A stretch of DNA of 63,699 bases, the filler included, from Lenisia limosa (Eukaryota; Protista; Breviatea): assembly GCA_001655205.1 (NCBI GenBank). It is 13 parts of 13 records of this genome, joined end to end, with 100 filler letters (N's around TTAATTAATTAA, not from the genome) between each part and the next. Parts side by side here need not be neighbours in the genome. Positions count along the whole stretch, not along the records: positions 1 to 28,343 come from LPNZ01005521.1; 12 more parts are not named here. One strand, written 5' to 3'. Shown here piece by piece: positions 1,953 to 28,342 of this stretch. Under the pieces are notes generated by a model. That model was not told the origin of the DNA and ran no database searches. It was given only the letters and a program-made list of their open reading frames with translations. The first letter of the stretch is position 1, and every line of letters begins with the position of its first letter. A program made the translations under genes and the position numbers.

Positions 1953-4320
1953 CTACAGTCAATTAGTGCTGTAATCTTTCAGAAAAGTCAAAAAAACAAG
2001 AACACCACTCCATCAGTCGCCTTTTCAGATGAACTTTAACAATAGTGGGCGTGAAAAGGCAAAGGTGGTGTGCAGTAAAAAATGGCGGGAAAGTAGATAG
2101 TTCATCAAAGCTGAATTGAGTGTCCATATACTATTTGGCAAAGACAAAGTACACCTTACCATGCTGCAGCAAAATCCCGTTGAACCTCTTCCTAGATTCG
2201 TCCCAGTGCAAGAAAAAACTCCTCTTTTCTATTTACAATGTGCTCTACTTACTTGATGAGATTGGTAGATTGATACTCTGACTGACAGAGGGCTGATATC
2301 TTGATATTTTGTGAATACTGAATTTGGGTAAAGGTGACAAAAATCCGTGAATTTGAACACGACATTCTGCTCGTTCTGCTCTCCTGCTCTCCTCTTCTGC
2401 CCCCTTCCCTTCTTCTGCCATTCTGCCATTCTCTGCTCCCCTCTTCCCCTCTTCCAGCTCTTCCATCTGTTCCATCCCCCCCTTGCATTTCCCCATCCCC
2501 CCAGCTTCCATCTTGAGTTTTCCTGTTTTGTATGTCATGCACAGTTGCATGTTAGATATTATACTAAAGCTGATAGATATTTCTACCTAGCATTTAGCTG
2601 ATCTTTGCGCTGTCACTTTCCCCTATTCCAAACCACACATCCTCGTCTCTCCATTGTCTTCTTGCCTTAATTAATTACGTCCATCAGGTTCGCTAAAGAA
2701 TGCCGCCAATGGGTTTAGCTCCAGCTTCAAGGTTTGATTTCTTGAAACCATCTAATTAGCTGTAGCTGCAGTCCCCACTCAATACTAATTGCCATCACCA
2801 TCCTTGCTGTCGTATTTCCTGTGTACCTTGTGGTGACTTTCCTCCATAGACAGCCTGAGTGGGTGACTGCAAATCAAGGTCAGCTTCTGAATGCTTGGTG
2901 GTATTTATCTTTTTCTTTGTCCGTAAATCTTTTAGCTCTCTCAACAAGGTCATCATCTCTCCCAGTTGTCCCCAGTCTTGCAAATTGGACGGTTTTAAGT
3001 TGGTGTCAAGCTAGATGACAAATTGGGAAGTGCTTGTAATATATGGCATAATTTATTGTTGTGATATGTCGCATTTAACTGATGATTTTGCTTTATTCAC
3101 CACTTGAGCAACATGCAATGTATTTTTGGAGCGAAATGATCTTTTTGATTGAATGTTATGTCCTGTAGACCCTTCACACTGCAGTAACACAATACAAGGC
3201 CCATTTTTTATTACTGATGATAGAGGTTTGTCACTTTGCGTAACTCGTAAGAACAACTTCTCAGTTCCTGAAAATCTATTGATACACTTTACTGTTACTT
3301 TCAAGCCTAAGAAGCTTATAATAACTTATCTAGGAATGCTCTGTCTCAAATCTGAAGTTGAAGGCAATGAATGCTGCCCATCTCGTGATATTGGAGGGGA
3401 AGCTATCCCCCCCATTTCGTCCCACCCCCATTACACAAGTGAGAATTTTTCCATTATGCATTTTTACAGCTGCAATTTAATATCATAGTTCCAAAGATTC
3501 TTTACTCATTTTGTACAAAGGTGACTCCTGGCGAGGACCATATAGTTGCCAGTTTTGTTCGTCATATTGCTGCCCCACTTTAGAGACATGTACCTCCTGT
3601 TGCCAACTACCAAGTAACGTTGGTGGTAGATATAGTTGCACTCTTTCGCGAATAGCTCCATTGTAAGTTTTCGTTCATGTCCCAAGGAGGAGCATCTTCG
3701 GTCCATTCTGTCTACACCGCCGCTGACGCTGAGTCTCCGCTCGATACAAACGAAGTTCCAGGTGGCTACGGCTGAATATTATTCCGGATATGAAATAAAT
3801 CCACCAGTACATACAGATATTTAGTACATTTTCAATATAATATGCATAGTATGTAACAATATCGATGTACGTATCATATGATATTACGTATATAGTACAT
3901 ATATTTGGCCATATGAGTACCTGGGAGTTTGTTATGTAACATATTACTCTATATCATTGGATGATTGTAATAAATGTTTGGATAATACACGATTTCCACA
4001 TCCTAATTATCAAAGGCCTGTGTTACCCTTTGTCGCACGTCTAGCTCCAGTGTTGTGCATGAGTCATATTACAAACGACAAAACCACTACTGCTTTGCAT
4101 GACTCTTTATGGTAGTGGTAGTCTGTTTCCTTTCTTGATATTATTTATTTCGACTGAAAATAAATAAGTGAAAATGAAAACAAAATGAAACAAAACAACT
4201 AAAGAATAATCAAATGCATCCTCAAGAATTAGGAATTTCTAAATTGTTAGCACAAATACGTTGAAATAGTAAAACGATAAAATGTTCTGTATGTGTATCT
4301 GGCAAGAATCGTCCACACCA

Positions 4321-7300
4321 CTACGTTTGATCCCTTTGGAGCCACCCCCCCCCCCAACAGTTTGCAGATCTCNNNNNNNNNNNNNNNNNNNNNNNNNNNN
4401 NNNNNNNNNNNNNNNNNNNNNNNNNNNNNNNNNNNNNNNNNNCTGACACAGCGGGATCTCTCTTAACAACATACTGAAGGGCACACCGCTTGACCTGAAG
4501 AGTAAACAAATATTCCTCAACGTCAAACCTGGTCAGCATCTACGAGGTCGATTCGTGAGAACAGCTCCGGTAGAGTCAGTCGTCTTTTGAAGGTCAGCAG
4601 CTGTCGACCAATGTCCTCGCAGATGTTGGACGATCCATCAAGCTGCAAGTAAGTAGAAGAGGTGTGCTAACCTCTCTCGCAATATTGGCTTTGAGTTGGC
4701 TCTTTGCTCTCTCAACTTCATCGTTATTAACGTTCTCAGAGAGGCGTTTCCTGATCACATTATAAATGCCACTTGAAAGCCTCAACACCCCCCCCCCCCC
4801 CCNNNNNNNNNNNNNNNNNNNNNNNNNNNNNNNNNNNNNNNNNNNNNNNNNNNNNNNNNNNNNNNNNNNNNNNNNNNNNNNNNNNNNNNNNNNNNNNGAC
4901 CCGTGTCCGTGTACCCGGTGAAAAAGGCCATGGAGGAAATGGCAATATCCTTGATTGTCATGAAAAGAAAGATGGACAATGGCCAATAAAGCTATTGGAA
5001 TGGATAGCAAACAACGTACTTGCTCAGCCAGTGCTTTTGAAAGCTGCGATGAAATTAACCGAAGGTTCCCTAAAGTGTCACATCTGGGTAACATGACAGA
5101 TAATCCTCTCTAACATAGTTGTTCTCCTGACACTGTAAATTATGGCGAACGAACATTCAATACTCGAATTGTCACAACATACTATAAGCATATATATAAT
5201 ATTACATCTACTATATCTATCACATTGTAAATTAACACTTGTGGTAAAGTTTGGAATTGTATTCATAGAGTGCACATGGGTGGTGAAATAAAAAATAGTT
5301 TGATGCAGAAGTGTGTTTAATAACAGTTTTATTTCAATACAGGTGTGTGCACTCAGAATATCCAACCAAAACAAACTTATATTGAATTTGTTATATCGTA
5401 ATAACAGATTCACGTATTTAGTACTGCCTTATTTGATTAATCTACTTAGATCAGTGGTCAAACCCCTCTAATCAGAGCAAGTATAAATGGCTGTATTCCT
5501 ATTATTACGACCCTTCTTGAGTATGGGGCCAATGTTTTCCATGCAGATAAGGTATTTTGTTGAACATACATGGTTATTTCAGGAGGTTTTTTACAAAGTC
5601 GAATGTAACTTGGTGTAGCAATATTAAAAAGTGAACAGCAATTGATCTGAAGTCTTACCTCCAGCGACGTCCCATTGGCCAATCATGGACTGCATTACCA
5701 AAAGAGGAAAGTAGTCCGCATGCCGCCATCCAACTCCCTAAACCAGATAATGCAAAAGCGCTACGTTTAAACATTTATCTGACACTGTTTGAGTGTTTCA
5801 AAAGATTAGTTAATTGACAACTGTCATATTAACATTTTCGTTCACTGTCTGTTTTACATTTTGAAACGAATCGTTTCACAAAAAAAGGTTTCAGTTGAAG
5901 TACCCCCCCCCCCTCTCATACCTCCACCGTAATTGCAGTGTTGGTGTAAGGCTGAAGGGGATCAATAACTTCCTAAAATATGAACCGTTGAGAAAAGCGA
6001 CCATTAAGATTAGACTAAAGTAGCTCCTTATTGATTTGATACAACGCACCAGAGCAAACGGAAGCAAACCTTGAAGCCCGGTGTGAACTGCGATGGGTAC
6101 TGAGCAAGGGCTTCCACAGCGGAAGGTCCAGATGGAAGCTTGCCGAAGTGCTTCTCTGTCAACTAAACAAGTTTTAAAAAAAGACAGATCCACACAAAAA
6201 AAAAACTCCTTACCTTGCACAATTCATCGTGATCAACGGCTCCGGCGGCGCAGACAATAACTCGTGATGAGTGGTAATGAGACTCGATATACTGACGAAG
6301 GTCCTTGCGATTGATGGATTGGATGTTACTATTGGGTTAAATTCAATGGATCATAGGTCAAAAAATAGTAACCAGCAAACATAGGAGGTCCGAGAATGGT
6401 TCGAGCCAAGGATGAACCCGAGTAAGCGGTCTCATGAAGGTGGTCGAACACAACTTCCTAAAAGATAAGCTTGGCTGGTGAAGGGAGACCCCACCTCCAC
6501 GTTCTTATCGACTTCCTCCATTTCTCTTAGGATCACGGCCCTTTCGTTCTCAATAAAAGCCTTTTCAAACTTCGAGTGCTGCAGGGAGGTGAAGAGACAT
6601 ATATACGTACATATATGTAACTTCAAGGACAATCCGTCCTCAACATACCTGCAGGATGTCGGAGAGAATTTCCACGGCATTTGGGATGTTTTCTTTGCAA
6701 ACCTATCCCATTGTTACTATCAAGCCAAGAATCAAAGAAGCCTAAATACACTTCATTATTTTTTAAAAAAATAAGTTGCAGCATAGAAAAGAGCCCATTA
6801 ATATGAACAACACCACCCTCCCACTTTGGCATAGTACACCGTTTGCTCTCTTGAGGTATACGCGTTCAGATGCGCACCTAGGTTTTCAACCTCAAGCTCC
6901 AAATCCCACTGTGTACGCTTCTTTGTACCCTACAATTTATTAACAAATTGGATATAGGATTTTGAAATCATATCACCTCTTTTATTTCATTTTCACAGGA
7001 GTGAACTATCATTGTCCAAACAGATATGACACCCTATCCATCAGTCTGGTAATTGAAGAGCCACTTGTAGGAGTATGAATACTCACACCATTTTTTTACT
7101 CCACCGCTATCCTGCTCATCGTAACAACCCACCTTGAAAGACATATGTTCTAGGAAATGGGCCACCCCGTTGTTTTGTTCAGTTTCAAAACGTGACCCAG
7201 CATCAATCCAGACGCCAACCTAAAAAGTCATGTGGTGTCACATAATTCAAGAATTAGATTACTGAAAAGAAGATCACACAAATCTGTACGAGTCGGTAAC

Positions 7301-7786: not shown

Positions 7787-8081
7787 CTCTCCTGTTTCTT
7801 GCCTGCCTACAAAAGGAGGCTGTAAATGCGCGATGTAAATAAGACGGAGAGAAAAGAGCGGAAGAGCAGTAACCGGGAACAGCGTACAGCGGGAAGCAGA
7901 ATATCTGGCTGTGATCTTGTGATCTGGTCGTGAACTTTCTTTTGGAATAATTGATTTTTTTATTTTTCCCACGCACGATATCTGCAGCCCCTGCAACAAC
8001 AGCCCTGCCCCCTGTGCCCCCCCAACTAGATAAAAACTAGATCTTCCACCTGCAGACCACCTGCCTGGTGTCACCCCTTGT

Positions 8082-11000
8082 ATGATGGAAGAAGACAAAG
8101 TCAAATCATGGGATGGGCAACTTCCAGACTGCAATCTTCTTGGCGTTGCACCAAAGGTGAGACTTCTCTGTCAGCATTGCCATGAAGTCTTTAGTTCACA
8201 AGCCAAAGCCAAGCTCATCATTTTGTCATTTAGGTGTTCTCTGGATTCGGACGTTCTAGCGCAGAAGGGCTCGCAGTTGGATGGACCTTGAACTTCGATC
8301 CCAGTCCGCCAGGTTGGAAGGTGTTCCTAAAGCGGCTAACAACTGAATAACAGCAAATGTGATGAATATCATTACATTTTCAGACTACTATGCATTGGCC
8401 AAACAGAGAAGACTGGCTTTCGCAGCAATCAGACAGTTAGTGAAAGAAAAAAAGAAGGAAAGGCGAAGGGAATTCATTCGCAAAATGATTGCCGAAAGAG
8501 TAGGACTCTGGTATTTAAAACAGAAGTCATTTTTTCAGGAAGCCCAGGCAACAATTATTGATGAAATACAAAGAGAAGATGATGCTGAAGAGAACATCGA
8601 GGTTAGTTCAGTCCCTTATCAATCCGTCTTTAGAAGGAAGAGCGAGACTGGTGTGGAGCGCCAGATGACCAGCGGATGTACGATGACTTACCTATTGGGC
8701 ATGAAGGCCGAAGCCGCTTCGTTGAGACAGCAGGTGATGATGCTGCTGAGGTTGAAGGGTGTCACTCTGTCGAGAGTGTTTCCATTGAGGATAGTGAAGT
8801 GGTTGAAGTAAAGGTTGAGGAGAAGGAAGGGGAAAACGAAGAAAAGACAGGAAAAGATGAATCATATAAGAAAATTAAGGTTCCTGATTTGCCGCGTGTT
8901 GAGGATGTTGACGTATCTGATGAAAATGGAACCTTCTTCGTAACAAAAGAGCGCATTCCCGAATTTCTTGTGGCAGTTCTCAATAAACCAGAGGTAAGAT
9001 GCACACTAGCCGCGCTTGTTTTATCTACGTAGCAATTCCTTGTATGTCATAGCCCTATTGAATTGTTTGGTGCGCTTGAAGGATTGTCAGATTCTTCGGT
9101 AAGGGTCAAGGTGACCATTCTTATTATCATCGCAGGAGCTTGTATGGAACCTCTTCGCCAGGAATCGAGTCCAATCCACTTCTGTTCTTCATAGCCTTAT
9201 CTTGTTAGGGGCGAGTTGGTGGCTTATTCTGTTAATGTGACCGGCCCTTCATGATATTTCAGATTATCCACGAAAGATATCTCCCCAGAATTGAAGGACT
9301 TTGAAACGATTTCAGCCTCCACAATTAAAATCTCTAAGGTTCGCTCAAATGAATATCTTTTCTTATTATCCAGCCGCACTCAGAGTGCAGTATTCATGAC
9401 CATTTGGCCTGGACAGCAGTATCTCTCACAACTGTTAGTTCTTTTCTTTAATGAAACCAATTCTAACCGTTTAGATATACCGTCTTCTTTGTTTTGAGGC
9501 AGATCTTGAGGCAAGAACAGCGGCTCTTTGTGGACTGGAGGCATTGCCTAATGCTGTAGCAAAATATGGCAGATTGTCGGAATGTTTGCCTTTCATCTTA
9601 ATTGAATTACCAATTTGGAAGTACTCTTATATTACTACATTAGATATTCAAAGCCAAGCCTTTATCGCTTTCTTTGTAGTTGAGAGAAGTGGTAAGTCTT
9701 GCTGTAGATATGAAAGAATTTTATTATTATTATTATTATTTTATGAAACATAGGTCTTGAAATTGATGGGCTTCGTGTTAAAAACGTCAAAAACACTCTG
9801 AAACAATCAGTAAAGGATGTTTACAAAGATCTAGACGGTATAGAACTTATCGTGTTGATCATTGTTCTAATTTCAATTAGGTGATTATTTGAAGTTCTTT
9901 TTGGACTATTCCAATGAATCAGTGCGGACTAGAAAAGGGTCAAAGTACCAGACACGGCTTCAGGAGCTTCTCTTGAGAGCATGCAAGGTTTGTTGTGGCT
10001 GTAACATTATTCGCTTTAGGAAGTGAAGGAAGACACCGATCGACTGATCTACTACCCGAAACGAGATGACGGATCACCCCTCCTAATTCATCATAAGTGG
10101 CGTTTCTTTGGTAGGTATCTTGCTGGTGTTAAAAATGTTATCTTCAGCTGGGGAACATCGCTTCATTAGAGCTTGGTGCGACCATGAATATTTCCGTTAC
10201 ATTTACACCTTCACAAGTCTGTTACCAGAGTCTGATATCCCTTGGTTTGTGGCCATGCTTCAACAGTAAGGAAGTCTTGAAACTGTATTTAAATAATCTT
10301 CTATTGTGGAGAGGAATTTGTAACGGATGTAGTGAAACGAACACGATTCGGCCGCACTACACGGTGTGTGTCCGCAACGGCCGAACTGCCTGTGACGGAC
10401 CAAATCTGCAGCACATTCCTCGAACCGGCGGCTTTAGGTAATTTCTTTAACTTTTCGCTGCCCTTATTTGAATGGTATATTTTAATTTCCTTATTTTGTA
10501 GATCTTGCGTTGTTGCTCATCCCGGAAATATGATAGTTGCCTGCGATTATCGGTTTATTGAGCTGGTGACTCTTTCGGCCGTTTGTAAACACAGGTACAG
10601 TCAAAATTCTTTGTCTCTCATCCTCCAGATACGGGACCAGTGTTCTTTCTGATGTTATTGAAGACAACTGGGATCCCCATTCTTTCACTGCTGCTATGTT
10701 TGCGAACATGCCTTATTCCAAATTTGTCAATCGTCTGTCATCCCATGATCCTGAGGTAACTATGCATATCATATGTAAAACGATACTAATTTCTCATACA
10801 TATCATATCATATGATATGTAGTTCTGAGGAAATAGATAAATCCTATCTTCTTTACTCATTTTGACACTAACTCTTGTCAACGCTCTAAGTTTACTTTAG
10901 GATCGCAAAGTTGCTATTGATTTGAGAAGGAGAGCCAAAGCTGTCAATTTCGGTATAGCTGGTGGACTTGGACTGAAGTCTCTTCGACAACAGGTGTGAT

Positions 11001-12546
11001 ACAATAATCATTTTACTTTTGTTGTGTGTGTGTGTTTGCCCACAAAGTTGTATAGAAAATTCTTTGTGGTTACTCTTCAGGCATTGGATGATTTCGGACT
11101 GTCGCTTTCTATTGTGAGTGGGATTTTGTTACCTTGCTTCTGAGTATCTGAAATAGTAACCCAGAAAGATCTTGTTAGTGACAGTATTATTGGCATCACC
11201 TTCAGTAACTCTCAAGGATGAAGCTCGCCAAATGAAAAAGCGTCTTGTCACTGAGGTGTATCCCGAACTTGGCTACTACCTCTTTGAAGATGTGGAACGT
11301 AGGTTTAATCTCTTTCGTTTTGGGTAACAATTCAGAGTTCCTGGCAAGTAACCTTGGAGTGTCAAGAAACCTCTTGCACATCAACTTCATTAGAGCAACC
11401 AAGTCGAAAATGCCGAAGAATGATCCGGTATTTTCCTTGCTTGCCTGTTGACATTGCAGCCTCTCGAAGGAGACATCAAAGCTGTGCTCTCGGGTATATC
11501 CTTTGCACAAATGCCTTATGCTACACATGTGAGTTATTCCTGGCTACTTTTGGCTTGTTATATACTGTGGTGGGACAGTTTTCTGGTACTATTTTATCGT
11601 CAACTTTTAATTCGATCATCGTTGTGTGATAGTACAGCTGAATATTGGTGATTGAAGAGGGAATTTCCAATGTTGACGAGGTAGATTGTGGTCAAGGTCT
11701 GGGAAGTTCTTCAGAAACTCAATAGGAATGACTCGTTGAAAGTAGGCTTTTCGGTGAAAATGTTATTATTGCTTACTTACTATGATCTACCTTTCAGAGT
11801 GTGATTTACTACTTAGGAGCCAATTGAGTCAGGTCTCCAAGCAGCTAAGGATGGGTGGGTAGACCAGGGCTGTTGTCTCATTATCCAGGCGAATTGTTCA
11901 ACACTGGAATGCTTCACTTTCAAAACAGCTTTTCGGTGCCCGCGCGTCCACACTCACTGGTATTGAAGGCAGATGTTTAGTCTAACATCATAGGGAGGCT
12001 TCGGAAAGGGATGACTTTCACACAGTCCTGCAATACCCCCTTTGCTGGTAAGCACTCTACTCTGATTCACCTATTTTCCTTTGTACCCAAGTATAAATTG
12101 TTTGCTATGAGGAACAACAACTTGTTGTGCTTCATGCCAATTTCTACCTTTTTCAGCAAACACCTAACTCTTTCAGGTTTGGCAGCGGATGGTGCCAAAA
12201 TGGCCATTTTTAGACTTTGTTCTCTTGGATATCGCTGTGTGGCATTTGTGCACGACGAAGTTGGTGGAGTGGCCAATTATTATTATTGACCACCAGACCC
12301 TCCCTTCACACTTCAGATCTTGATTGAAGTTCCCACTGGCGGCGTTGGCAATGACGGCACAGATGTGGCTCTCAATGGTACCCTGGCCGAGCGGTCACTT
12401 CAAGGCCATATGGAGTTCATTGAGAGAGTCATGCAAGAGGCCATGATGGTAGGTGTTGATACCGTTTACTCCTTACACCCCAGGAACTGGTGTTAATTCA
12501 CGTGGATGTGTCAGTTGTAGCAGGCTCGTGCTGGTCAAACAAGTAG
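8082..12546 (+). CDS. Family A DNA polymerase, resembling the kinetoplastid Pol IB/IC/ID and phage-related clade; start unresolved
   Basis: Spliced motifs: IRPHYTVCVRNGRTACDGPNLQHIPR, VACDYRFIELVTLSAVC (motif A), DPHSFTAAMF, RRRAKAVNFGIAGGLG (motif B), LVTEVYPELGYYL, STLTGRLRKGMTFTQSCNTPFAGLAADGAK, GYRCVAFVHDEILIEVP (motif C), ending ..CWSNK*. It has many short GT-AG introns. Confidence 0.92.
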
Positions 12547-12693
12547 AAGGTACGGCTAAATCAAATAACTTCTCACTTGGCCCTTAGATGGAGAATTCGT
12601 CATCTCAGATATTATTTCCTGAGCACCAAATTTTGTTTCTAAATTTTTGTCTAATATTGTATTTTTATGTTCTCAAAGTAGTTTGCATTGCAG

Positions 12694-15600
12694 TTAGTGG
12701 ATGTTTGCCATTGCGCTCATCACCATGCCCTCAGCTGTAGCAGGGTATTCGATCAGACGGGCTCCGTCACCATCAGGGACAACATGAGGCTAGATGGTGA
12801 GGAATGGCGAACTGGACCTCCCCCAACCTGAACAAGAACTCTGCGTGGTTTCATTTTCTCCAGAACCTCAAGTCTCAATTCTTGCATTTCAGGGGTCACA
12901 TTTGTTAATTCTAAAAAAAGTAAGACTTGAAGGATAGCAGAGGATAAGACGTACCAGAGAACATTTCGATGCCTCTTTTGTCACCAATGGCCTTGAAAAT
13001 ATTGAGCTTGGAGAGAAGAGCGTTGATAGCAGGGACTCCAACAGTCTTGATCTTTGATCCGTCCATGGTCAAGAGAGTGTCACTTCTGTTACCGTGACTA
13101 AATAGCAGTTACTTACTTTTCCTTTTTGAGAGTGACAAAGCCTTCGCCAGCTCTGAGCATCGTGTTGAGAATCGCATGACGTGCTCTCATGTGGGCTTGG
13201 CCCCATTGCGCTGTCTGGATAGTGAACGATTGGCTGTCAACACACCGTTGGTTCGTAATATGCCAGGGACATTACTCCTGCACGTGCCATTGAAAGCCAG
13301 TTGGAGTACACAATGTTGTCAGCTGCAAAGTCAAAATGCGAACAGGACAGTTTCAATACCATCAGAGCCTTCATAGCCGAAAATTTCGAGAACATCATCC
13401 CTAGCTCCTACAGCGTAAAGAGATATTTAAGGCATTCAGATAACAATCCACAGTCGGAAGCCACACAAACCAAGAGTAATTCCGACACACTCAGCACGAC
13501 ACTCTTCGTAGGGGTTGGAAAGTGACCCGTAAACGGTGTTGAAGTTGGTGTCAGGCTGGAGGGTGAGAGGCAATTCACCTCACAAACCTTGTACCAAGAC
13601 TGGACAGGTTTGTTGGTGGTGGGGTCAATGACAGTCTTTTTGAAGTTCAATTTCCCGTCTGAATCTTCCTGTCTCGGTCATCGCATACAAAGAAGAGGGG
13701 GTTTTGAAAGCAGATAGAACTGAATTCCCTCAGGCTTCAATCATTGCACTCTCAGTGTGACCTACCATAAACAATTTGCCAACACCATGACCAAGAGCTT
13801 CATGTACACCAACCTTAGTGGTGAAAATTGGGCGATAAGACAAGACAGAAGATTGGGCAAAACAGAGATTTCAATGGGTTTTCTCAAGCAAAGAATAAAA
13901 AGAAGCAAAACTCACTTGGATAGTAAAGGCCTTGTTGGACCAGTCATCAAGAATTTTTGAGTCTTCAGCAGTGACAAAAGTGAACTCCTTAAATGGTTAA
14001 TTATATTTTCCCAGGAATTCTGACCTCTCCCTTCTTGTAAGACGACAAGACATTGCCAAGGGCAACATTTTTGAACCCTTCCTCTTGACGGATATCATCG
14101 TAATTGCTTCAATTGTCACAATTTGATTTGTACACATATGAAACCTTTGGAGCGTTCGCTTACGGGATGTTAATTCCTGCGGGAACGCCGGAAGAGGTGA
14201 ATGTCACCACGTCAAGGGAAGTAAAATCTGGTTCAAGGAAAGTGCTACAATTGTTAGAATCAAGCTAGGAAGCAAAATAGAGAAGATGGCAAAATTGTCA
14301 GCACAAAAGAGTTTCCGCTTTGAAAATTAGAGTCCCATCAGAATCCTTTAACATGAACTCTCTCACTCTTTTTCAAACTCTGGTCCCCATGGAAGTTCAG
14401 AAATGAGTTTAGTCTTTCCAAGTTCCACCAGGTTACTAAACTAAATGGTCAAAATCATTATCTTTCTTCTGACTTTTGTACTCTCTTCTTTGTCAACAAC
14501 AGCAACAAATCCTTCAAATTCACCACGAAGGTCTAAACAAGTTAAGATCACCACAATTTATGAAATAACACGGTGAGAAAAGAATTACACAGGACTTACT
14601 TCGGGGGTCTCTGTAACACTCAATAAACCCGATGTTGCACTCCACATTGGGTCCCTTATCTTTCACCCAATGCCGCTGTGCATCCTACGAAATGTCACTC
14701 CAACACTTCTCCCAACCTTGTGCTTTGAGATGGCTCCAGTTTTGAAATGCTCCACATAGTTCTCCATCATGTCTTTTTGATAATCGTTGGCAGCATCAGC
14801 TTGAGACTAGAGACTCAGGCGCTAACAAATCGAAATGTCCAACACAAGAAGTACAAAACAGGCGTGAACCCAGCCCCCTCTTACAAATTGGAGGAAACGG
14901 GCAACGTTGTCGAGACAGTCCGAGAATTTGCCATATCTCACTTCCACGTCATTATGAACTCCCTGGGGGAACTCAGCAGCTCCTGTGGTCTCAGCGGACG
15001 CAACTTGGATTACAACTTTACTGAGTTGTTAGACCAGAGAAGGAGCTCACGATCCGTCCTTGTCAAGGGTGGTATTAAAGATATGATCGTTGTCAGTGAG
15101 GGAAGCGAGGACATCTTCGGCTTTTTTGGCTTCTTCCTCGGTCACGCCACCATTGATATAAGTTGTGATCCCCTCAGGGGCCATGCCTGATTGTCAAATA
15201 TTGCATTTATTATTATTATTATTAAGAAAGCACGTTGATTTCGACACAATTTCCAAGCTTGCAACAACCCATGAGCGCACCAAGTTGCTTTTCGTGATCT
15301 TCAATGGAGTAAATCTTGCCAATCACCTTTTCCAAGAGAAAAACAGCCTAGAAATGTCAAACGTATTTCACTAACATCTTCGGCAGTGGAAGCGGAAGCA
15401 ATCTTCTTTAAGGAGTCAGAGGGAATTCGAGGAATAAACTAAAACGTAAGATTGGTATAATAGCTTAACATAAAAATAGAATAAAAAAAATAATACCAAA
15501 AACAAACACGTCTTAAGAATTTTTCTGTAAACGTCAAACCTTGGTGTCTCCAAAGCTCTTGTAGTTTCCCATGTTTCCAAAAAAGGCAGCTTAGCAATCA

Positions 15601-26400: not shown

Positions 26401-28342
26401 AAGGAGGCCTCCGTCAACAACACCAAGAAGAACTATGGATAAGTTGAAAACCCAAACAGTTTATCTTGGAAGCAACTCACCTTTCTGGTCACCCTTGCTA
26501 TTAAGCGCCTTGAACTCAGTCACACCAAAGGCAGGAAGATGGTCAACCACATCAAGGTAAAGCTAAATATGGTCAGATTAGGAAACCGGAAAAAATTTCA
26601 CAGTCGCATATCCTTTGACACCCACCCCCATTCTCACCAGCTGAGCAGTGAGAACGTCAAATTTGAACTGAGAAAAGAGCTGGAAAGTACGGCGCTCGAA
26701 TTCCGATCTTGGTAACGCGTCTGAAATGACAAGAGGGAAGAAGTCAGTGAAGGCATAGTCCTTGCTAGCTCTAAAACAGTTAGACTGATGCACAAGAGAT
26801 CAATAAAAGCCTACTCAAAGAAGCCGGGGCGGTGTAAAGAGGAGTCAAAAGTACCAAACTCGGCAAGGAACTATTGTGTTAAATGAGAGAGGGTAGCAGC
26901 AAGAGGAAACAATGGAACGGATAGCCTACCTGAAGGGCAGCAAGACGGATGGCAACATGGGGAGGGCATCTAGAACGACCTTGAAGGACATCATTGTTGA
27001 CTTGGTAGTAGTACATGCGGACAAGTCCCGGGTCATCACGGAAGTTTGGAAGCGCCTAAAGTATGATGGGGACGTTGTAATTGCTTTCTTACCTTGACAC
27101 ATCTGAGCTTCAATGTGAGACGAGAGTTCTGATCAATTTGAGGGTTTTGGGCATTGAGAGGTTTCATCAAATCAATCCAGTTGTCTGGTGGTTATCAGTA
27201 AGAAAAAAAAAAAAANNNNNNNNNNNNNNNNNNNNNNNNNNNNNNNNNNNNNNNNNNNNNNNNNNNNNNNNNNNNNNNNNNNNNNNNNNNNNNNNNNTTG
27301 CACACAACATCACGAAGGGTCTAGATGTTAACTTGCAAGAATAACCAACAGCAGCAGTTGCATCTTGGTTGATTGTGATAAGAGTTCCCTTTTCGTTCAT
27401 GAGATAAACTTGGACTTGGATCTTGAAATATAAGAAGATAGAGGGAGAAGACATACCTCTGGTCCCTTTCCAGGATTAGCCATAGGAGGCGCGCTTTTAG
27501 GCCAATTTGAGGCATTGAAAGGTTGAAGGTTGAGAATTTTTAGGGACGGAGAATCCTGTGGATCGGGCAAAACCTTCTCTGTTTGGACCGTCTAAGGGAG
27601 GTTAATCGCTAATACTCAGTTAAGAATTAAAATAAGTATTAAATGTGCTCTAACAGGAGGTCAAAAGGACTTTTTGTCTTCTACTACAAATAAATATGCT
27701 CTCTCCCCCTCTTCTCCCCTCTTCCTTCCTTCTTACCCTTGGAGTTGCGGGTTTTCCAGTGATAGGTGACTAAAAAGGTCAGTATATCGATTCCCCCTTG
27801 AAAACCAACCGAAGCAGTAGGAAGAGTTGCAAATGATCCTTGGTTGAGAAGTGTTGGAATTGATGACAACAGAGATGGATTCGCAAGAGATGGGGCTTTT
27901 AAGGTTGGAGAGGCTGCTATTTTATGAAAAAAAAAAAAAAAAGATCAAGAAACACCAACGAGCTACAGAAGATGAGGCAGTTGATGGGGCAAGGAGCGGT
28001 GGAGGAGCAAGTCCACCAAGTGAAGAAACATGTTGCATTCCAGAAAAGGAATTCGGGTCACCAAGTGCACCAGGAGGTGGAATATCGCCCTAAATGTCAG
28101 ATAATGAAAATACTTACAAGAGGGGGTGGAGGAGGTAAGTCGAAATCTAAAGAATGAGCCATAAATTCAACAGTTCATGAAAAAAAAACAAAAAAAAACA
28201 CAGCAAACCCACTGTCAAAAGCTGGTGGAGGAGGGAGACCAAGAGGAGGTGGTGGTAAAAAGTCACCAGCGGGAGGCGGAGGGGGCAGATCGAAAGCGGG
28301 GGGAGGAGGTAAATTACCGTTCATAGGAGGAGGAGGGGGAAG
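23409..28342 (-). CDS. Proline-rich + FERM + RNI-like leucine-rich-repeat protein (5' end runs into a gap)
   Basis: Poly-Pro exons at 28000-28340. FERM exons NWIDLMKPLNAQ..LKLRCVK, LVRMYYYQVNNDVLQGRSRCPPHVAIRLAALQ and LYLDVVDHLPAFGVTEF. LRR exons LHLHHNKLGEKGATALS, INELNVSENDFSGDNAKHVGQLL and LEYLGLRSNSFGSSGATHI. Stop at 23409. Confidence 0.85.
23839..23932. mobile_element. MITE family A, complete copy in an intron of the FERM-LRR gene
   Basis: 23 bp TIRs GGGTTTCACTTCGGTTCGAAAAA / TTTTTCGAACCGAAGTGAAGCCC with one mismatch, preceded by TA. Confidence 0.8.

Follow-up and report, generated by a model that had tools for sequence, protein, structure and literature searches.

A full-length, RNA-supported gene model for abanPolA, a predicted nuclear family A DNA polymerase, in the breviate Lenisia limosa

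A 63,699-nucleotide (nt) stretch of Lenisia limosa DNA (assembly GCA_001655205.1; 13 parts joined end to end with filler, here called the window) carries, on the plus strand of its first part (LPNZ01005521.1), a gene for a family A DNA polymerase that is split by many short introns. This gene is very probably the L. limosa version of abanPolA, residing in nuclear DNA and expressed, and its product would be a proofreading-free polymerase that most likely acts in nuclear DNA repair or lesion bypass. The gene, its family and the distribution of that family are already published and are not new; what is added here is a full-length, RNA-supported gene model of a breviate abanPolA.

The abanPolA family was defined by Harada et al. 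(2024, Mol Biol Evol 41:msae014; PMC10877234) in Apusomonadida, Breviatea, Amoebozoa and Nebulidia, with a predicted nuclear location and a planctomycete origin; L. limosa, as a member of Breviatea, belongs to one of these host groups. Table S1, in the preprint version of that paper, lists a partial "Lenisia limosa abanPolA" under EukProt EP01086, a transcript truncated at both its 5' and 3' ends that was omitted from the paper's Fig. 1. By-eye comparison over the whole length of this partial protein placed it at residues 339-694 (356 amino acids, aa) of the spliced protein described here, from the exon at 9754-9837 to that at 11685-11741, and all 14 of 14 probes picked across exon joins were present in order in the EP01086 entry. 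Because the catalogued entry is transcript-derived, the splice junctions within its stretch are independently confirmed. Beyond that entry, the full gene supplies the whole set of exons (29 in number), the N-terminal half with its degenerate exonuclease-like domain, and 149 aa at the C-terminus. The window protein shares with abanPolA the hallmark motifs DYxFIEL, DPHxFTA, AKAxNFGIPGG, VYPE, NTPFSGLAADGAK and VAFxHDE, along with its place in a clade with the Arcella, Copromyxa and Pyxidicula proteins and its planctomycete sister groups. It is also the most divergent member in the sample, with 35-45% identity to the others, and the Paramoeba aestuarina abanPolA of Table S1 is very different from it. 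A Paramoeba host, with its Perkinsela symbiont, had been considered for this DNA and was rejected on account of that difference and of the match to the Lenisia entry.

The gene model comprises 29 exons separated by 28 GT-AG introns (32-227 nt, median 50) and encodes 843 aa, as established from polyA RNA contigs together with arithmetic on them. The sequencing basis was one study that provided a polyA RNA run (X1) and a DNA run (X2), with contigs placed on positions 7800-12900; in that region five RNA contigs from X1 gave 15 explicit GT..AG joints, and joints not explicit in the RNA were set by record-coordinate and depth arithmetic on the contigs. The library label is metatranscriptomic, which would be accounted for by the culture of Lenisia together with bacterial partners. 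After the exons are joined, motif A (DYRFIEL), motif B (RRRAKAVNFGIAGGLG) and motif C (VAFVHDE) lie in a single open frame, which closes with a TAG stop at 12544-12546 on the plus strand. An earlier note on this DNA, made from the sequence alone, had described a complete polymerase domain divided by short GT-AG introns; the splicing check bears this out, and every motif quoted in that note was found in plus-strand frames at the place given for it.

The immediate neighborhood of the gene is eukaryotic as well. Downstream, and convergent with the polymerase gene, the minus strand carries a DPP3 gene (Peptidase_M49) that is itself split by introns; a Peptidase_M49 exon is at 12914-13072. The 3' untranslated region (UTR) of the polymerase gene extends to position 12789 or beyond and runs across the 3' end of DPP3, and the two transcripts are joined in a single RNA contig of 3.7 kb. 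The closest prokaryotic relatives of the polymerase are frequent in metagenomes, and this could be taken to mean that the sequence is bacterial or phage contamination of the assembly and no eukaryotic gene at all. That explanation is hardly credible, however: polyA RNA shows that 28 spliceosomal GT-AG introns are removed, the convergent, intron-split DPP3 gene lies on the same scaffold, and the gene is placed in a eukaryote-only clade (see below). The introns, the polyA RNA and the intron-split DPP3 neighbor together rule out a bacterial contaminant, in agreement with the earlier note.

On single exons, Pfam returned only a sub-threshold DNA_pol_A match; the relatives exceed the Pfam PF00476 threshold. 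An exhaustive search with a 97-aa genomic open reading frame (ORF), which reads through an in-frame intron from one exon into another, found only the artefact of that same ORF (P0001) and distant relatives; the EukProt Lenisia transcript was missed because it ends upstream of that piece. The intron concerned, 12048-12176 (129 nt), is in frame and has no stops, so that a genomic ORF of 92 aa spans two exons, and the public protein P0001 (161 aa) is a prokaryote-style gene call of the same 12048-12176 stretch on a 52-kb contig of an ENA metagenome assembly. The best distant relative from the search was a transcript of Clydonella (Amoebozoa) at 38% identity, and a search with that relative returned 420 proteins, among which the EukProt-named ones were all amoebozoan (Copromyxa, Arcella, Pyxidicula) and the named bacterial ones mostly from Planctomycetota. 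The consensus of a 14-sequence family alignment has the hallmarks of the window protein, including NFGIPGG and a motif B that lacks its Tyr. With a hidden Markov model (HMM) built for the family, the score of the window protein is 510 bits, in a single domain, and that of E. coli Pol I is 82 bits; T7 gp5 gives no match at E<=10. In the PDB, the family profile finds the Pol I structure 8JRB (1e-50) and the PREX/apicoplast polymerase (about 1e-31), then the Bst, Taq and Klenow enzymes. The first two share with the family the two-domain layout of exonuclease plus polymerase, but their motif B is canonical (NFGLIYG), their exonuclease is active, and the similarity is at the family level only.

Prokaryotic and viral members were collected more broadly. 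With each prokaryotic species represented by one genome, a scan listed 79 bacterial loci, mostly in Planctomycetota or other members of the Planctomycetes-Verrucomicrobia-Chlamydiae (PVC) group; the 80 loci that were kept did not include Novipirellula and Tautonia, the two species named by Harada et al. (PMC10877234). From IMG/VR came 80 viral contigs, roughly 25 of them with full-length relatives at 33-37% identity. Among GenBank phages, a tblastn search with a family member yielded distant PolAs only, as partial matches of <=36% identity, and the close viral relatives are in IMG/VR only.

A tree of 85 rows and 689 columns was computed with IQ-TREE (LG+C20+F+G4, posterior mean site frequency approximation) from the window protein, 13 other sequences that are eukaryotic or eukaryote-like, relatives from bacteria and viruses, and three further polymerases: E. 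coli Pol I, T7 gp5 and a jumbo-phage PolA. The window protein lies inside an 18-row clade that holds all eukaryotic sequences (support 100/99), and this clade is nested in one dominated by Planctomycetota (support 96/91). Three rows of the eukaryotic clade, P0065, P0063 and P0068, are Arcella EP01124, Copromyxa EP01127 and Pyxidicula EP01125, each of which Table S1 of Harada et al. names as abanPolA (PMC10877234). The placement is unchanged with the corrected protein. Counts by alignment column show three derived states that the eukaryotic members have in common: the Asn in VRNGR, which occurs in 16 of 16 eukaryotic sequences and in 0 of 64 prokaryotic or viral ones, a Cys before NTPF, and the loss of the Gln equivalent to Klenow Gln849.

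The earlier note had proposed a different affiliation, either with the kinetoplastid mitochondrial PolIB/IC/ID clade or with phage and prophage PolA. Like those enzymes, the window protein is a nucleus-encoded protist family A polymerase of foreign, mobile element-related origin, and a place within or beside the clade, reached by an independent phage transfer or through a kinetoplastid and yielding a new organellar replicase, could draw on the motif B without Tyr, on the foreign origin of the gene and on relatives carried by phage contigs such as L098 (see below). PolIBCD+ polymerases, however, are reported to be autographivirus-derived, mitochondrial and confined to Kinetoplastea and Diplonemea (PMC10877234). 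The comparison was made by proxy, with T7 gp5 standing for the autographivirus group and for PolIB/C/D in both the profile and the tree, and by this proxy the window protein does not form a clade with T7-like polymerases: T7 gp5 has no detectable similarity to the abanPolA family profile, which E. coli Pol I does match; it is the most distant row of the tree; and the best PDB matches are of the Pol I and PREX types. The host, furthermore, is a breviate, with a mitochondrion-related organelle (MRO) that reportedly has no genome; 28 spliceosomal introns interrupt the gene; and it is already catalogued as abanPolA. Membership in or sisterhood to PolIBCD+ is thus highly improbable, and the profile and tree comparison instead sets the window protein with the abanPolA clade nested in Planctomycetota. 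The note's alternative of a phage or prophage PolA was nearer the mark, since the relatives are prophage-like and include phage kin. The idea of an independent transfer holds to the extent that the host is not a euglenozoan and that its polymerase, a non-canonical member of family A, was gained laterally; neither a new transfer nor a kinetoplastid donor finds support.

The residues of the active site are informative about likely function. Alignment to the E. coli and T7 enzymes shows that the core of the polymerase is kept, with Asp497, Glu502, Arg564, Lys568, Phe572, Asn747 and the His777-Asp778-Glu779 triad all present. The motif-B Tyr is missing across the whole family, and in the window protein the position of Klenow Tyr766 is occupied by Gly576, in agreement with the earlier reading of this motif. 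Klenow Tyr766 and Gln849 have roles in fidelity and in minor-groove checking. At the Gln849 position, 63 of the 64 members from prokaryotes and viruses have Gln, the 17 other eukaryotic members all have Ser, and the window protein has Ala. The bacterial and viral relatives have a proofreading domain with intact motifs, and to this domain the exonuclease-like N-terminal half of the window protein aligns. In the window protein no DxE motif aligns at Exo I, the Asn and Asp positions of Exo II are His and Glu, and the Tyr and Asp positions of Exo III are His and Thr. Since the protein would be without proofreading and has the residue of neither Tyr766 nor Gln849, the enzyme is likely to be error-tolerant. 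The Lenisia enzyme would thus work as a DNA polymerase without proofreading, and its most likely role is the repair of nuclear DNA or the bypass of lesions. The earlier suggestion of a new organellar replicase is unlikely, because abanPolA is predicted to be nuclear and breviate MROs are reported to be genome-less (Harada et al. 2024, PMC10877234).

Several points weigh against this reading of the gene as an active nuclear abanPolA. The tree was built without the apusomonad, other breviate and Nebulidia abanPolA sequences, and the end branch of the window protein is 2.0 against a median of 0.54, the longest in the group. Long-branch attraction would draw the protein to the outgroups and not into the eukaryotic clade. 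The Lenisia copy also has changes of its own at otherwise invariant positions, namely Ala at the motif-B Pro, IELV for IELC, and Ala at the Gln849 position, and activity could be altered or reduced by the Pro and Gln849-position changes. These substitutions, the long branch and the loss of the exonuclease motifs would all be expected of a degenerating or neofunctionalized copy that is expressed but is no longer an efficient polymerase, serving for example in DNA binding or scaffolding. We consider this improbable: the metal- and deoxynucleotide-binding residues are all intact, and the reading frame is open over 28 introns and 843 codons and is expressed. Moreover, other eukaryotic members likewise lack the exonuclease motifs and the Gln, which makes these losses old and compatible with function.

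A further point on the same side concerns the N-terminus. The first 30 residues are hydrophobic and basic, out-of-frame ATGs lie upstream, and a targeting signal is possible. From ATG 8113 the protein begins MGNFQT and continues into the hydrophobic, basic stretch, and the Thecamonas abanPolA was called mitochondrial by one predictor (Table S1, PMC10877234), so the Lenisia protein might be directed to the MRO or another membrane compartment rather than to the nucleus. The start codon is uncertain, however, and a long acidic tract follows the putative signal; most full-length abanPolAs are without a predicted organellar signal, and there is the reported absence of a genome from breviate MROs (PMC10877234). 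Such targeting is accordingly very unlikely, and a nuclear abanPolA remains the preferred reading.

The 5' part of the gene, all of it on the plus strand as is the remainder, was modeled as follows. Exon 1 (7980-8156) contains the 5' UTR and the start of the coding sequence at ATG 8113, the first in-frame ATG of the polymerase frame; RNA contig record 1 spans 7980-8157, and a GT donor is at 8157-8158. Exon 2 (8384-8435) and exon 3 (8524-8601) were placed by depth bins of RNA record 2, with 54 nt covered in bin 8313-8483 and 76 nt covered upstream of 8632, respectively, and both have GT-AG flanks. The joint between exons 1 and 2 is without direct RNA contig cover and is based on 2-3 contig letters, and the N-terminus of the model is uncertain and should be taken as provisional. 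The earlier note had put the gene at 8082-12546: its end is exact, but its start does not share the polymerase frame. Once the joints that the RNA supports (8156|8384, 8435|8524) are made, the frame of ATG 8082 runs into a stop; a start there was considered and rejected, in that it needs a non-GT donor and otherwise stops after the RNA-supported intron 8436-8523. ATGs in three frames occur at window positions 8082-8115, before or overlapping the polymerase start. Those of the other two frames, also in exon 1, are 8082/8085, which open a short ORF with a stop in exon 3, and 8108, whose ORF, once spliced, closes at 8809-8811. This arrangement suggests leaky scanning, control by upstream ORFs, or a true start located later.

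Exons 4 to 10 encode the degenerate exonuclease-like half. Exon 4 (8634-8993) carries an acidic low-complexity region and the start of this domain, and is covered by the RNA record 2 piece at 8632-8989. There is no RNA contig at 8990-9193, and within this interval exon 5 (9033-9098) and the acceptor of exon 6 (9136-9203) are provisional, resting on frame, usual intron sizes and the alignment of relatives. Exon 5 is Exo II-like (..CHSPIEL..), is in frame, aligns to the HNxxFD (Exo II) region of the bacterial and viral relatives, and has flanking introns of 39 and 37 nt. Exon 6 aligns to the family, and its final 10 nt match a loose RNA end joined to 9263. A single 142-nt intron at 8994-9135 had been tried here and was replaced, provisionally, by the additional exon that aligns to Exo II. 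The next three exons come from RNA record 3: exon 7 (9263-9338) by length arithmetic; exon 8 (9374-9433), Exo III-like and lacking the Tyr and Asp, from the alignment and the requirement of the record for a 60-nt exon; and exon 9 (9475-9583) from a piece with the same limits. Exon 10 (9644-9691) was placed by depth, with 111 nt covered in bin 9510-9680, which fits no other exon, and with it the IQxxxxIA..ER.G segment conserved in the family is recovered; a 12-nt microexon at 9680-9691 was dropped in its favor on the basis of the depth arithmetic and the family alignment. The following intron (9692-9753) contains an (ATT)n-type simple repeat at 9712-9750.

The EukProt partial protein starts in exon 11 (9754-9837), which is set by an RNA joint (9838-9880) and by the match to the Table S1 sequence. 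From exon 12 to exon 25 the RNA joints are explicit: exons 12 (9881-9987), 13 (10020-10110) and 14 (10148-10244) lead into exon 15 (10333-10437), which encodes VRNGRT..PNLQHIPR, the Arg668-equivalent region identified by column analysis. Motif A, with Asp497 and Glu502, is in exon 16 (10502-10594), where the weak Pfam DNA_pol_A match and the column analysis agree with the joints, and DPHSFTAAMF is in exon 17 (10629-10755). Exon 18 (10901-10993) encodes motif B and the O helix (RRRAKAVNFGIAGGLG), and column analysis assigns to it Arg564, Lys568, Phe572 and Gly576. Exon 19 (11081-11113) is followed by exon 20 (11217-11298), with VYPELGYYL, and by exons 21 (11336-11427) and 22 (11460-11528). The EukProt protein ends (..NRND) in exon 23 (11685-11741), and exons 24 (11817-11854) and 25 (11889-11959), the latter with ..STLTGR, complete this series. 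Exon 26 (11994-12047) encodes ..NTPFA, in which column analysis finds Asn747 and, in place of Gln849, Ala751; its upstream joint is explicit in the RNA. Downstream, the 674 nt of contig between the pieces at 10626-10753 and 12317-12447 equal the sum of the exons, so that introns 12048-12176 and 12260-12316 are fixed. Record arithmetic and column analysis likewise place motif C, with the His-Asp-Glu triad, in exon 27 (12177-12259). Exon 28 (12317-12448) is covered by the RNA piece at 12317-12447. Exon 29 (12484-12549) encodes the C-terminus, with the typical family A ending ..G.CWS.K, and the TAG stop; the 65 otherwise unplaced contig nt between 12447 and 12586 agree with it. A GT-AG intron of 38 nt in the 3' UTR (12550-12587) begins 3 nt after the stop, and the RNA pieces at 12317-12447 and 12586-12789 are in one contig. 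Elsewhere in the window, runs of N (scaffold gaps or masks) lie within 1009-1383, 4239-4526, 4594-5096 and 27167-27454.

The genomic settings of the prokaryotic relatives bear on the source of abanPolA. In five planctomycete loci that were examined (L005, L008, L012, L028 and L030), PolA is directly preceded by a primase-polymerase/helicase gene, and a tyrosine integrase is located within a few kb of PolA in four of the five (L005, L008, L012 and L030); L028 has the primase and a topoisomerase, and in L005 the exonuclease is encoded as a separate ORF. The 48-kb IMG/VR contig L098, an uncultivated virus genome, is that of a tailed phage, with a large terminase, RecE/RecT, methyltransferases and a primase-helicase beside PolA. 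To judge from the primase-helicase and integrase modules and from phage L098, the prokaryotic relatives appear to be replicases of mobile elements and phages and not housekeeping Pol I enzymes; the planctomycete modules resemble integrated elements that replicate themselves, in contrast to a chromosomal polA. The PolAs of the planctomycete elements and of the IMG/VR phages are the prokaryotic sisters of the eukaryotic clade and share with it the PolA family, NFGIPGG and the lack of a Tyr766 equivalent. They differ in that they keep Exo I (DTETE), Exo II (HNxxFD), Exo III (YxxxD) and the Gln849 equivalent, are intronless, and stand beside a primase-helicase and a tyrosine integrase or in a phage genome with a terminase.

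Two further groups of prokaryotic sequences were observed. The 1738-aa protein P0019 and a 1719-aa ORF of L019 consist of some 1000 N-terminal residues without annotation, followed by a C-terminal exonuclease and PolA, and they may be fusions with the primase-helicase. More distant members of the family occur in Dependentiae (L053/L058) and Bdellovibrionota (L054, L060), lineages whose members inhabit other cells or prey on them; Dependentiae are amoeba-associated, and these members may be relevant to routes of transfer.

Several eukaryote-like metagenome contigs (L002, L003/L004 and L006, with proteins P0030, P0044 and P0032) carry split housekeeping genes, ribosomal L32e and Prp3, and on these contigs the abanPolA polymerase domains are uninterrupted single ORFs of 516-659 aa. 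Set against the 28 introns in Lenisia, the single-ORF abanPolAs suggest heavy lineage-specific gain of introns in a gene of bacterial origin. Tentatively, and with somewhat less than an even chance of being correct in all its parts, a history may be proposed in which the source of abanPolA was no chromosomal planctomycete PolI but a self-replicating integrative element, with primase-helicase, exo-PolA and integrase, or a phage of these bacteria. Proofreading and the Gln849-equivalent contact to the minor groove would then have been lost in the eukaryotic lineage, giving a low-fidelity polymerase of nuclear repair or bypass, and the Lenisia copy, the fastest-evolving of the sample, would have gained its 28 introns. 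The element and phage context would refine the published origin from a "Planctomycetes bacterium" to one from a mobile element. The eukaryotic members, including that of Lenisia, have lost the proofreading motifs and the Gln that senses the minor groove and have kept the catalytic core, and the Lenisia gene illustrates that a gene of prokaryotic origin can take on 28 tiny introns.

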